Below are positions 1,643 to 3,593 of a DNA stretch of 64,000 bases, piece after piece. Below the pieces are notes generated by a model. That model was not told the DNA's origin. It made no database searches and saw only the letters and a list, made by a program, of their open reading frames with translations. Origin of the DNA: Pocillopora damicornis (Eukaryota); the NCBI RefSeq assembly GCF_003704095.1, contig NW_020845854.1, positions 1 through 64,000 on the forward strand. Reading direction: 5' to 3'. Position numbers and translations under genes: made by a program. The stretch's first letter is position 1, and every line of letters begins with the position of its first letter.

Positions 1643-3593
1643 CTATGGTATCCACTCTATTAGCTCATCCTCAAAACAGTGGTTTACACAGTACATAAAG
1701 GGAATTTTATCTCCCTGACGTCCTGGCATGATGTTATACACGTGGCATCTTTTAATGGATGTTTCACCAGCTGGATGTACCAGAAAATCATCCTCATCCT
1801 GATGACCAGGGCACTCAAGTGAGGGGCAAGCAGGTCCACAGTGAAACTTCANNNNNNNNNNNNNNNNNNNNNNNNNNNNNNNNNNNNNNNNNNNNNNNNN
1901 NNNNNNNNNNNNNNNNNNNNNNNNNNNNNNNNNNNNNNNNNNNNNNNNNNNGATTTTCATTGATTCTTTCCATAGTGGATCTCTCCATGTTGCCTCTGTG
2001 CGTTCCCACAAGGAGAATTGGAGTATTTGATGTCACATGGCTACAAACTGACTCAAGCCAAAAATGGAGACTCTTTATTTTTGCAGTTAAGTCTCTAAGA
2101 CTATCCTCTGCAAACTCAGCCATGTTAAATACAATGACATAAATAGCTTGACTTCTTAGAAACATATGGAAGTAGGCCTGATACTCTTTGTCTCCAGCAA
2201 AATCAAGAATCTTAAGTTTCAAGGAAGACCACTTCTGATTCAGGGCATTTTTCAACTTTTTGTGGTCTATTACTGCTTTTTCCAACTGTACTGCGGTAAA
2301 AGTACCTGGACCTACGTGGTCCTGGCTAGGTGTTGATATTGCAGATTCCAACCAAAAGTATTCTTGGTGTAGTGTGTGACAGAGAAGTACTAAAAAAGTC
2401 ATGGCAAGTTTCTCGCTTGAAGAGAGAAGACATGCAAAAATGCATAGGAGAAAAATAATGCTTAACAAAAATTTTGCCCATTGATGCCACTCTGGTAGTG
2501 ATTTTAGAATTCGAGGCACTGACTCCGCAAAGAAAAATACAGAGTAAAAGATGACCATCACGATAGAAACCTGATGTAGAATTTTTGAATAAAATACACC
2601 AACTGTTGTTGCTAAAATGAAGCCTACAAAAGTGTTTAAGATGAAACGACTAAAGAAGATGACTTCTATTGGTCTTTGGTTGTTCAATTTCAGTTGACCT
2701 GGTTGGGGACACTTTTGCTCCAAAGCAAACGATCGTGGGCCTCTTAGAAGTAAAAAAGCGACGTACCCAAGAACGATTACTGTCGCTACAAAGAGGACAA
2801 CTTGAAAAATTGCAGTTTTAGATGGCTCGCCGTAACTGATTTCGCGGTGAAAACGAAGTAACCCAACAGAAAGAAATGTTCCGATTAGAATTCCACGAGG
2901 GTTGACCATAAAATAGCACAAGCCCGCCTTTAATCTCCAATCTTCTTTTGGAGAGAAAAAAAAAAACCAAGAGTCACAAACGTAAAGGAAAACAAAGATA
3001 AAAATAATACTTATGAGCAACACGCAGTGATTTTCTTTTGGAGGATCCGTAATTATTGTTGTTAGCATTAAAGAGATTATAATTCCTAACAGCGGCAGAG
3101 CGAGACCACTGTTGTTTTTTCGAAACCTAGATTGCTGGAAAATTACATTTCCAGCCCTTCCATAAAGCATTAATTGAATAAAAATGTCTAAAAAGAATCG
3201 GTTTACGTTTCCAAAAATAAGATCCTTCGTGTCAAAGTTCTTCCATTTCTCATCAACAAGACTTTGCTCAATTCCTGTTGTTCTTGGTTCCATTTCGTCG
3301 AAAGGCTTTCCACTGATAGCCCTGACCAGACTTGTTTTTCCAACTCCAGAGTCCCCTAGGACCAAACATTGTCCCTGAAAAACGAACTGTTGACACATTT
3401 TCTCAGTTTGATGAGGGTCGTGGTAGGGATCAAGTTTCAACCCTACTTTCTCAAGCAATTTTTCGTAGGTTCTCCTTCCTTCTGGTAACCGATGTTCAAG
3501 TCGCAATTTTTCCATTATATTGCTGTGCTTATCGAGAGTTTCAGTATCAGTGACCACAATGCGCTGAAAGTCGAGGCTCGTGTTGGGATCCAT
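1643..3593 (-). CDS. Roc (ROCO-family)-type GTPase with a multi-pass membrane insertion; C-terminal (COR?) part interrupted by an assembly gap
   Basis: Open frame 3593 to 1952 with G1 GDSGVGKT (3333-3356), switch-I RTTGIE, G3 ILDFAGDKEY (DFAG 2193-2204), YVIVFNM, FWLESV and G4-like LLVGTHRG, the Roc motif order. About 8 hydrophobic segments lie between G2 and G3. After the gap, KFHCGPACP...FEDELIEWIP* (1851-1643) is the probable C-terminus; that join is inferred. Confidence 0.8.
1852..1951. other. Assembly gap (100 N)
   Basis: Run of exactly 100 N; true size unknown. Confidence 0.99.

Follow-up and report, generated by a model that had tools for sequence, protein, structure and literature searches.

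To our knowledge, the ROCO proteins described so far (among them LRRK2, the kinase linked to Parkinson's disease) are all soluble and are recruited to membranes by their partners, and all of them have a contiguous G domain with a short turn between strands β2 and β3. The conversion of their nucleotide state into an output is still under debate. Whole domains placed within the Ras-like fold near the switches are found in G-alpha (the helical domain) and in SRP/FtsY (the I-box), where they modulate nucleotide handling. Atlastin, mitofusin, FeoB, SR-beta, Miro, and the GIMAPs are GTPases that are permanently attached to membranes by their own hydrophobic helices. In Arf, the β2–β3 interswitch changes its register with the nucleotide state, a movement coupled to membrane engagement.

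The gene described here is located in a stretch of 64,000 nucleotides of DNA (the window) of the coral Pocillopora damicornis. The data support the view that its product contains a single Roc G domain into which a multi-pass hydrophobic domain has been inserted after G2 and ahead of G3; as far as we know, it would be the first case in the Ras superfamily of a G domain with a multi-pass membrane domain inside it. In LRRK2 Roc the β2–β3 turn comprises ~12 residues, whereas in the coral protein ~340 residues, including eight predicted membrane helices, take its place. The inserts of G-alpha and SRP/FtsY are soluble, none of them being a multi-pass membrane domain, and that of G-alpha precedes switch I. 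In the atlastin-type GTPases the helices precede or follow an uninterrupted G domain, whereas the coral chain is predicted to exit and re-enter the G fold through the membrane. Arf serves as a working analogy only, its membrane element being a peripheral, N-terminal amphipathic helix, and no homology to Arf was seen past the common Ras-like fold. Literature searches on ROCO/Roc, transmembrane, coral/cnidarian, split GTPase domain, and pats1 did not retrieve a description of this architecture; the ROCO papers examined bring up transmembrane helices solely when they name a method of prediction or deal with proteins of another kind.

Gene structure and transcription

The features of the locus are the following (window positions, strand, description, and basis of the assignment):

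1643–1849, minus strand: visible end of the last exon, in a frame different from that of the part before the gap (tblastn and translation)
1852–1951, no strand: assembly gap of 100 N (N runs in the sequence)
1953–2228, minus strand: second half of Roc up to the gap, aa 456–547, with β3, G3, switch II, and the G4 position (Pfam, LRRK2 alignment)
2229–2333, minus strand: outgoing neck, aa 421–455, with strand 431–442 and helix 444–455, leading back to β3 (AlphaFold model)
2334–3113, minus strand: membrane domain, aa 161–420, with eight predicted TM helices (hydropathy, AlphaFold helices)
2673–2744, minus strand: loop 4 between helices 4 and 5, aa 284–307, a Lys/Arg-rich predicted β-hairpin with strands 290–292 and 300–304
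3114–3242, minus strand: ingoing neck, aa 118–160 (agreement of the full-length and insert-only AlphaFold models)
3243–3386, minus strand: first half of Roc, aa 70–117, with β1, G1/P-loop, α1, switch I, and β2 (Pfam Roc/Ras, PDB matches)
3387–3593, minus strand: N-terminal region, aa 1–69 (translation; AlphaFold strand 6–15 and helices 20–29, 32–35, and 40–49)

Translation of positions 1953–3593 on the minus strand yields a single open frame of 547 codons, which begins with the start codon at 3591–3593 and runs into the assembly gap; the long hydrophobic segments in one intronless frame that were noted in a preliminary description of this DNA are indeed present, corresponding to eight AlphaFold helices. 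Hidden under the gap are what remains of Roc, all of COR, an intron, and the beginning of the last exon. The piece of the last exon that follows (1646–1849, minus strand) encodes a Cys/His-rich C-terminal tail of 68 aa (KFHCGPAC...CVNHC...EWIP), ending at the stop codon in 1643–1645. This tail is 98.5% identical in a tblastn comparison to the C terminus (aa 765–832) of Pocillopora verrucosa model P0057, and no Pfam family matched it. Homologues of full length comprise 860–950 aa and include COR-A. A 592-aa ORF (1815–3593) was rejected as the coding end because it reads across the Ns and is in the wrong frame past the gap.

Could the hydrophobic stretch result from intron retention, from faulty assembly, or from the decay of a gene into a pseudogene? 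The gap does break the window copy, the NCBI models of P. verrucosa paralogues are devoid of 120–135 aa of the membrane region, with the X2 and X3 isoform models skipping codons ~223–341 and ~223–357, and another copy in the same genome (C2075, locus L003) carries an in-frame TAA. Such an origin of the stretch is nevertheless extremely improbable. At the local base composition, the chance of finding no stop over the 338 codons of the insert is estimated as ~8e-11, and the frame with its conserved motifs recurs across numerous species and independent assemblies, dN/dS being below 1 at longer distance. The same unbroken ORF is present in independently assembled Tara metagenome scaffolds (L013, L014, L021, L023) and coral genome contigs (L017, L018, L020, L022), and paralogues in the genome of P. 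damicornis itself have intronless frames of 854 aa and 687 aa. The insert can be aligned over more than 40 homologues, with identity down to ~31%; 43 full-length sequences were aligned, and all of them extend over the insert, so that homologues lacking it, which the preliminary description had named as a sign against its proposal, were not encountered among them. Neither was excision of the hydrophobic region, another such sign: RNA contigs from four polyA/oligo-dT runs of three studies are colinear with the genome over 1952–3630, with no joint within the ORF. These contigs stop at ~3587–3630, just 5' of the ATG, and the depth in the upstream region 4327–4800 is zero in all four runs. At the donor position used by the shortened NCBI models, the window has GC instead of GT; on the basis of the GC donor, the colinear RNA contigs, and the conserved open frame, intron retention was rejected. 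Given the NCBI models missing 120–135 aa, shorter isoforms or copies may exist. The split Roc/membrane architecture is, with high probability, real, and the gene transcribed.

A Roc domain split between G2 and G3

The Pfam Roc profile (PF08477) matches the protein with 59.5 bits, compared with a cut-off of 27, as one domain in two stretches. These pieces, located at aa ~74–110 and 446–532, are ~340 residues apart; the stretch printed by Pfam aligns aa 446–532 with profile positions 43–117 of 119. The homologues score 46–67 bits. Sequence matches in the PDB place the interruption in the same region, with residues 57–109 corresponding to Rab2B 5–57, and residues 73–109 to LRRK2 Roc 20–58, the latter being aligned also over residues 455–534. 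The alignment breaks at residues 109|454 of the coral protein, opposite 57|66 of Rab2B and 58|71 of LRRK2 Roc. The motifs are found where the preliminary description had put them: G1 (GDSGVGKT) is formed by aa 80–87 (3333–3356), G2 by Thr105 (3279–3281) in RTTGIE, and G3 (DFAG) by aa 464–467 (2193–2204). The G4 position (1992–2003) is occupied by THRG. Strand β2 terminates in Trp117.

Among the 43 homologues, Gly80, Gly85, Lys86, Thr87, Ser88, Thr105, and Trp117 of the first half are invariant, as are Asp464, Phe465, Gly467, and Thr531 of the second, and Arg533 and Gly534 are at least 93% conserved. G1 (GxxxxGKT/S), the Thr of G2, and G3 (DxxG) are thus intact in all 43 sequences. The G4 consensus [NT][KH]xD is not matched, the sequence being T-H/Q-R-G instead; Gly534 is present in 41 of the 43 sequences and is followed by Asn in 21, Asp in 16, and Thr in 4. 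Because the canonical Asp of G4 is absent and THRG is found throughout the family, guanine specificity, and with it the name GTPase, is not assured.

LRRK2, LRRK1, C. tepidum Roco, and M. barkeri Roco2 share with the coral protein the order of Roc followed directly by COR, as well as intact G1, G2, and G3, and in both the Ras-type catalytic Gln after DxxG is missing. The G4 position opens with T-H in LRRK2 (VGTHLD) as it does in the coral protein (VGTHRG), although the latter differs from LRRK2 in the missing Asp at the canonical place and in the added Cys/His-rich tail. LRR, ankyrin, kinase, WD40, and death domains are all missing from the coral protein. Only ~70 residues precede the P-loop; a Pfam scan of this N-terminal region (aa 1–69) found no domain in it, and one strand and three short helices are predicted there. 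The preliminary description, in which neither an LRR nor a death domain was seen ahead of Roc, is borne out by the Pfam search, which found no LRR, kinase, or death domain anywhere in the protein.

The fold was analysed in an AlphaFold model of protein P0001 (99% identical), a model of modest confidence, with a mean pLDDT of 57.5 for the full-length chain and 62.1 for the insert alone. In this model the two halves rebuild one Roc fold, as had been proposed for checking. Whole Rab proteins align with it across the insert (Rab8a: 166 of 169 residues, Z 15.2, rmsd 4.0, model range 72–601), as does LRRK2 ROC (174 of 194 residues, Z 15.2, rmsd 3.2). LRRK2 Roc-COR (residues 1314–1808) aligns with a Z of 17.9 over 224–238 residues; ROCO proteins are the best structural matches of the coral model (Z 17–18), and LRRK1, LRRK2, and bacterial Roco lead its Foldseek matches. 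In the model, the insert is placed on the tip of the β2–β3 (interswitch) hairpin and is entered via a three-stranded neck.

The inserted membrane domain

The full-length and insert-only AlphaFold predictions concur in showing eight helices and a neck. In the ingoing part of the neck, two predicted strands (134–144 and 150–159) link β2 to the first helix; this part ends with the positively charged sequence SRFRKN and includes the conserved residues Phe120, Lys123, Leu125, Phe127, Gly128 (invariant), Phe133, Leu141, and Gly145. Conserved in the outgoing part are Phe432, Thr433, Val435, Leu447, Ala450, and Leu451 (invariant). The predicted helices comprise residues 162–182, 189–213, 217–254 (kinked), 259–283, 308–334, 338–365, 369–388, and 392–419, and are thus 20–38 residues long; their hydrophobic pattern is retained in the 43 homologues. 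The kinked helix 3 carries a conserved G234xxxG238, and a conserved Glu411 is located near the end of helix 8. In the alignment of the 43 inserts Gly238 is invariant, and Arg220, Gly234, Pro298, Gln300, and Glu411 are almost so. Two of these residues, Pro298 and Gln300 (invariant in an alignment of 10 inserts and at least 90% conserved in that of 43), belong to loop 4, which is predicted to be cytosolic, has a mean K+R of 5.3, and carries a motif of the YPGQxK type, PQPGQLK in the window copy.

The membrane-spanning role of the insert is a prediction from the sequence and the model, and the insert might in principle be a soluble helical domain, buried or lipid-binding, the family-wide mean hydropathy of helices 3, 6, and 8 being only moderate (0.86–0.96). 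This reading is very unlikely, however, considering that eight segments of 20–28 residues are present, that Kyte–Doolittle 19-residue windows peak at 1.6–2.9 within them, and that the mean hydropathy of the other five is 1.4–2.0 throughout the family; in addition, the loops between the helices are short, and the charge bias obeys the positive-inside rule.

The even number of helices expected in the preliminary description agrees with the eight predicted by AlphaFold. The suggestion made there that both halves of the G domain lie in the cytosol is matched by some of the predicted features and not by others: eight predicted passes and a K+R sum of 7.5 in cytosolic loops vs. 3.6 in outer ones (with a mean of 2.35 before helix 1) agree with it, whereas loop 2, predicted to be cytosolic, has a K/R of only 0.53, and loop 5, predicted to be outside, has 1.84. 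An arrangement with both termini inside and both halves of the G domain in the cytosol is thus predicted, with G1 and G3 on the same side of the membrane.

No relatives of the insert outside the family were detected. A profile search with the insert against 1.84 billion (1.84e9) representatives yielded 28 clusters, all of them family members; the insert is in the identical place in every cluster long enough, the remaining clusters are short fragments, and Roc was found in all six of the full-length or N-terminal matches scanned with Pfam. Pfam scans of the inserts of ten members gave no recurrent match. Isolated weak matches (E1-E2_ATPase in one member, with E of 0.0011, as well as DUF3429, MFS_1, and YwiC) were rejected, none of them being recurrent. 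Foldseek comparison of the insert-only model with the PDB gave no match at E ≤ 1e-3, a look-alike search of the ESM Atlas gave no usable match, and in a wide VIA alignment the best Z of 8.0 corresponded to generic helical hairpins of 80 residues, the noise level for helical models. The fold of the membrane domain is thus one without detectable relatives.

Distribution and evolution of the family

All members that bear a species name are from stony corals, a range based on this named subset, on few clusters, and on a quick tree, with the careful search unfinished, in which the other members nest among corals. In corals the family has expanded and been tandemly duplicated, and both deep clades keep the insert. 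In automatic annotation its members go by the names "uncharacterized protein" or "pats1-like kinase"; a part of the membrane region is excised from several gene models. The part of the window copy that encodes COR lies under the gap, and what is said here about COR comes from homologues in the family: COR-A (PF16095) is precomputed in many family matches; among five NCBI gene models P0061 reaches 35.4 bits, compared with the cut-off of 35.3, the other four being below it (19.6–28.1 bits); and P0001 gave no Pfam COR match at E ≤ 0.1. With Roc identified by its profile and COR adjoining Roc in the family, the protein belongs to the ROCO (Roc-COR) family.

The closest paralogous group is a family of soluble coral Roc-COR proteins (C1630, loci L005/L006 in the P. 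damicornis genome) with 70 relatives, one of them named as from Desmophyllum pertusum. Identity to it amounts to 28–31% in Roc-COR and to 50% in the half that contains the P-loop. Its members share a long insert that follows the conserved Trp ending β2, and in them the Asp of G4 is also missing (VGTRRA). Their insert differs, however, in comprising ~140 residues that are Ser/Pro/Gly-rich and not hydrophobic, with no membrane domain.

The membrane core evolves rapidly. Its dN/dS is 0.5–1.0 vs. 0.15–0.4 in most comparisons of the G domain, and the helices are the most variable region of the protein, with an entropy of 2.18 bits vs. 0.7–1.0 in Roc and COR. A helical periodicity of conservation is marginal in helices 5–7 (p 0.013–0.043) and not significant in the others, and is not taken as evidence of a packed bundle; a conserved polar stripe could not be demonstrated in the helices. 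This rapid, weakly constrained evolution fits the role of a simple anchor just as well as that of the receptor or GTP-gated channel suggested in the preliminary description. The eight helices would then only tether an ordinary Roc-COR switch, with the β2–β3 loop being a permissive site for insertion and no signal passing between bundle and G domain, a reading that is less probable but has to be taken seriously. The nearly neutral core of recent paralogues (dN/dS 0.8–1.0), helices 1 and 2 with little conserved past their hydrophobicity, and, in the soluble sister proteins, an insert in this position that looks disordered, suggesting that the site tolerates anything, are all in its favour. On the other hand, a tether would need no more than one helix at a terminus or a lipid anchor, yet the eight helices, the GxxxG motif, the YPGQxK hairpin, and the conserved neck persist in all paralogue lineages; dN/dS of the core drops to ~0.5 at longer distance, and helices 5–7 weakly display a conserved face.

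Proposed mechanism

The explanation that we favour as a whole, and consider probable, is that of a membrane-resident Roc-COR protein, an integral-membrane ROCO of a pocilloporid coral, whose nucleotide switch may be coupled to a helical bundle. The chain would run from a short N-terminal region through Roc up to β2, the neck, and about eight helices to β3, G3, and the rest of Roc, followed by COR and a small Cys/His-rich tail. Both G halves would face the cytosol together with COR and with loop 4, which is basic and conserved. The protein would form a membrane-resident, nucleotide-dependent switch that is probably dimeric via COR, as is the case for other members of the ROCO family. Since the interswitch hairpin is where the chain passes into and out of the membrane, we propose that switch movement and the state of the bundle may be mechanically linked, with the conserved neck and the cytosolic hairpin of loop 4 as putative contact elements between the G domain and the bundle. 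A functional coupling of bundle and switch, as opposed to plain anchoring, is put forward tentatively, as somewhat short of an even chance.

A rival reading would involve a nucleotide-gated pore or channel, or else a membrane-damaging effector, in which Roc-COR oligomerization or the GTP switch might open or assemble a conduit from the bundles. The analogy is with executors of cell death that operate through switches of the STAND/AP-GTPase type, and the interswitch location of the insertion, the conserved polar or charged residues in or near the helices (the Arg of an RGxLxG motif and Glu411), and the tandem expansion of the family are consistent with it. ROCO relatives are also connected with death and immunity pathways (PMC8195603), which points the same way. 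We consider it improbable, with no channel or transporter fold or family resembling the insert in Foldseek, VIA, or Pfam searches, with highly variable helices in which no polar stripe could be demonstrated, and with the gene constitutively present in polyA RNA of several studies. Rather unlikely, too, is the proposal that a Ras-like switch stands in series with an eight-helix bundle of new fold, to which a rigid β neck connects the interswitch hairpin, with nucleotide binding or hydrolysis directly gating or reshaping the bundle, or a membrane ligand or lipid setting the nucleotide state. If true, it would imply a channel, transporter, or flippase-like activity, and a receptor and its G protein united in one chain, a device that only stony corals would have.

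Returning to the membrane-resident Roc-COR switch, its Roc interswitch is covalently tied to a membrane bundle, an arrangement that the two main branches of stony corals have both kept; whether the Roc switch regions can perform mechanical work by moving may be tested on this natural example. For coral biology, the finding brings in a family of putative membrane signalling proteins that has expanded, with tandem duplications, evolves fast, and is so far restricted to corals. Such a profile is typical for genes of immunity, symbiosis, or self/non-self recognition, and the family expansion, the tandem duplication, and the fast membrane core would fit a role in lineage-specific sensing or signalling of this kind.

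Reading frame and the split Roc domain

The gene on the minus strand encodes a ROCO protein of unprecedented architecture, in which an orphan membrane domain divides a single Roc domain. Its frame is cut by an assembly gap.

1953–3593, minus strand: Roc gene ORF up to the gap, 547 open codons, ATG at 3593
1852–1951: assembly gap of 100 N, cutting the Roc gene frame
1646–1849, minus strand: end of the last exon after the gap, last 68 residues, Cys/His-rich tail

With the base composition of the window, a stop is expected every ~15 codons in a random frame, and the chance that 338 insert codons run without one is, by our estimate on the same basis, ~8e-11. 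Pfam PF08477 recognizes one Roc domain in two stretches (59.5 bits, cut-off 27), one of them pairing aa 446–532 with profile positions 43–117 of 119. The sequence matches to solved structures are broken at the same place: residues 5–57 and 66–138 of Rab2B correspond to residues 57–109 and 454–536 of the query, and residues 20–58 and 71–141 of LRRK2 Roc to residues 73–109 and 455–534. The 8–12 residues skipped in these chains comprise the end of β2 and the turn to β3, so the insertion does lie between G2 and G3, as proposed earlier from the nucleotides alone; more precisely, the alignments place the interruption at the tip of the interswitch hairpin. The motifs occupy the positions given in the preliminary description (G1 GDSGVGKT, aa 80–87; G2 T105 in RTTGIE; G3 DFAG, aa 464–467), and every hydrophobic segment quoted there is found in the translated frame.

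Homologues and transcripts

The split membrane-Roc frame is genuine rather than artefactual. A word search with the window protein found 229 relatives, mostly of 860–950 residues with Roc and COR-A, more than 100 of which span the entire query including the insert, at identities down to 31%. The frame is also uninterrupted in the independently assembled Tara Pacific coral metagenome scaffolds L013, L014, L021, and L023, as well as on large contigs from assemblies of other coral genomes (L017, L018, L020, and L022). The genome of the window itself carries two more intronless copies on contig C4151, with frames of 854 and 687 aa, and a third on contig C2075 with an in-frame TAA. This last copy (C2075:58800–60179, L003), which may be truncated or a pseudogene, matches only aa 398–853 of P0001, the protein 99% identical to the window gene product, at 51% identity, and its 502-residue open frame begins within the membrane region. 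In an alignment of 43 sequences, the length and hydrophobic pattern of the insert are retained, with G238 invariant and R220, G234, P298, Q300, and E411 conserved in at least 90%.

RNA contigs from four polyA/oligo-dT RNA-seq runs (three studies) are colinear with window 1952–3630, some of those on the Roc gene being 990 and 866 bases long, and none has a splice joint inside the Roc ORF, although contigs can miss rare isoforms. Since coverage ends just upstream of the ATG and depth is zero at 4327–4800 in all four runs, the signal comes from RNA rather than from DNA contamination. Immediately 5′ of the gene start, at 3662–4136, contig depth rises to hundreds or thousands, and each of the four runs shows numerous differing joints and loose ends; this stretch resembles a highly transcribed repetitive element (transposon or SINE-like) more than a part of the Roc gene.

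The NCBI models P0056–P0058, paralogues from Pocillopora verrucosa, lack 120–135 residues of the membrane region. Two of them are labelled isoforms X2 and X3 and have a common donor after KEDWRLK with different acceptors; at the equivalent position, the window carries GC, not GT. The shortened models could arise from genuine alternative splicing, with the loss of several helices, or from introns introduced by annotation.

Predicted structure and topology

AlphaFold2 was run on full-length P0001 with the 43-sequence alignment (mean pLDDT 57.5, 66–82 over most of the insert) and, independently, on the insert alone with 10 sequences (pLDDT 62.1, pTM 0.59). Both runs yield an identical set of elements.

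aa 134–144 and 150–159: ingoing neck strands, after β2
aa 162–182, 189–213, 217–254, 259–283, 308–334, 338–365, 369–388, and 392–419: eight helices
basic loop between helices 4 and 5 (loop 4): β-hairpin
aa 431–442 (strand) and 444–455 (helix): outgoing neck, back to β3

The third helix (217–254) is kinked at the conserved RGxLxG. Both Roc halves are predicted to build one G fold in the full-length model, aligning with 166 of the 169 residues of Rab8a (Z 15.2, rmsd 4.0 Å, model range 72–601) and with 174 of the 194 residues of LRRK2 ROC (Z 15.2, rmsd 3.2 Å); as the C-terminal half alone has only ~145 residues, these alignments require both halves. LRRK2 Roc-COR aligns with the same model over 224–238 residues with Z 17.9. 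Across the family, loop charges speak for eight passes with both termini inside (N-in/C-in): on average, Lys and Arg together number 2.35 ahead of helix 1, 5.33 for loop 4, and 1.63 for loop 6, against 0.4–0.7 for loops 1, 3, and 7; loops 2 (0.53) and 5 (1.84) are off this trend, so the topology is a prediction.

Relationship to ROCO proteins

Roc is identified by Pfam as well as by the structural matches, and COR through the homologues, the window's own COR lying under the N gap. Of the full-length members scanned with Pfam, none has an LRR, kinase, WD40, ankyrin, or death domain. G1, G2, and G3 are invariant in the 43 sequences. In 41 of the 43, T-H/Q-R-G stands at the G4 position, followed by N (21), D (16), or T (4), whereas LRRK2 has THLD at the aligned position. 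The canonical guanine-specifying Asp is thus absent or shifted, and "GTPase" is to be taken as a Roc-type P-loop NTPase whose specificity for GTP is putative.

The 68-residue tail is 98.5% identical to the C terminus of a P. verrucosa model, and a Cys/His-rich tail is found in Oculina too; no Pfam family corresponds to it. The pattern HCGPAC-x4-CPG ... CxxH is conserved, being common to the window, Oculina, and the P. verrucosa models. The tail could be a small zinc-binding module.

Searches with the membrane insert

A profile of the insert alone found 28 clusters among 1.84 billion representative proteins. The insert is at the same relative position in every cluster long enough to show it, the rest being short fragments, and in all six full-length or N-terminal matches scanned, Pfam finds Roc beside it, on one side or both. 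Among ten inserts no Pfam family recurs, Foldseek gave no PDB match at E ≤ 1e-3, and a search of the ESM Atlas gave no usable match. A Foldseek-independent structure search reached at best Z 8.0 with 80-residue helical hairpins, which lies within noise for helical models by the tool's calibration. By these sequence and model comparisons, the insert is an orphan domain. Full-text literature searches brought up no ROCO protein, nor any other G domain of the Ras superfamily, into which a multi-pass membrane domain is inserted, such absence not being proof; the public annotation of the homologues is "uncharacterized protein" or "probable serine/threonine-protein kinase pats1".

Distribution and origin

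All species-named homologues, a minority of the set, are from stony corals (Pocillopora verrucosa, Stylophora pistillata, Oculina patagonica, Desmophyllum pertusum, and Montipora capricornis), which cover both the "robust" and the "complex" lineages. A quick maximum-likelihood tree has two deep clades, one with both C4151 copies and the other with the window gene, and Oculina occurs in two subclades. Tandem paralogues in the same orientation are present in L022 (6001–8598 and 12258–14598, 3.6 kb apart) and on C4151 (297283–299790 and 313776–315680, ~14 kb apart).

The closest relatives without membrane helices form a second coral Roc-COR family with 70 relatives.

C1630 (contig of the same genome), loci L005 and L006 (L006 at 1489–2694, minus strand): two tandem copies of soluble Roc-COR relatives

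This soluble family also has a long insert right after the conserved β2 Trp, at the same β2–β3 site, but of ~140 residues, rich in Ser, Pro, and Gly, and non-hydrophobic. Its G4 is VGTRRA, and its nearest named non-coral matches are sea-urchin "pats1" proteins (29–32% identity). In the simplest history, a coral Roc-COR lineage would already have had an expandable β2–β3 loop, into which one branch put a membrane domain, arisen in situ or captured from an unrecognizable source, presumably before the extant stony-coral lineages split.

Other features of the window

An exon-sized ORF with an F5/8 type C (discoidin) domain (7813–8127, minus strand) lies ~4 kb upstream of the Roc gene, and another coral assembly has a called gene with such a domain (L017, 2288–2692) ~3.3 kb upstream of the homologue P0101; the synteny may be conserved. 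The 1702-residue intronless ORF at 58161–63269 (minus strand), with an N-terminal DUF4559, a middle DUF7779, and many TPR repeats, looks like a STAND/NLR-like architecture and probably belongs to the innate immunity repertoire of corals. Two intronless ORFs in divergent orientation (38084–39505, minus strand, 473 aa; 43898–45472, plus strand, 524 aa) both match the alcohol acetyltransferase (AATase), condensation, and PapA_C acyltransferase families, forming a pair of paralogues, of an enzyme type that looks bacterial or fungal, within a coral contig.

Functional implications

The product is predicted, with support, to be a membrane-embedded Roc-COR protein whose G domain, COR, and basic loop-4 hairpin face the cytosol. 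It would dimerize through COR, as other ROCO proteins do, and would switch with the bound nucleotide. In Ras-like proteins, Arf being the best-known case, the interswitch shifts as the nucleotide state changes, and here the chain runs from the interswitch hairpin via the conserved neck directly into the membrane; this position of the insert is what makes the protein interesting.

The helical bundle may be coupled to the G-domain switch, a tentative reading that falls short of probable. The best-conserved positions of the insert are in the neck, the cytosolic loop-4 motif, and the GxxxG helix-packing motif, not in the lipid-exposed helices, which fits a device whose cytosolic face communicates with the G domain; eight helices are also retained where one would anchor. 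The membrane core has pairwise Nei-Gojobori dN/dS values of 0.78–1.04 for closely related sequences, dropping to 0.49 for more distant ones, and the flanking G-domain halves 0.14–0.39, with the exception of one RocC comparison (0.75) based on four substitutions; column entropy agrees (2.18 bits in the helices versus 0.68–1.02 in Roc and COR). Such near-neutral evolution fits equally well an anchor whose helices merely tether, which we consider somewhat unlikely. The coupled device and the pore ideas taken jointly, in their strong form, are doubtful, and a gated pore or effector is improbable. The family's expansion, tandem duplication, fast evolution, and apparent coral restriction point to lineage-specific sensing, which may concern, for example, immunity, symbiosis, or allorecognition.
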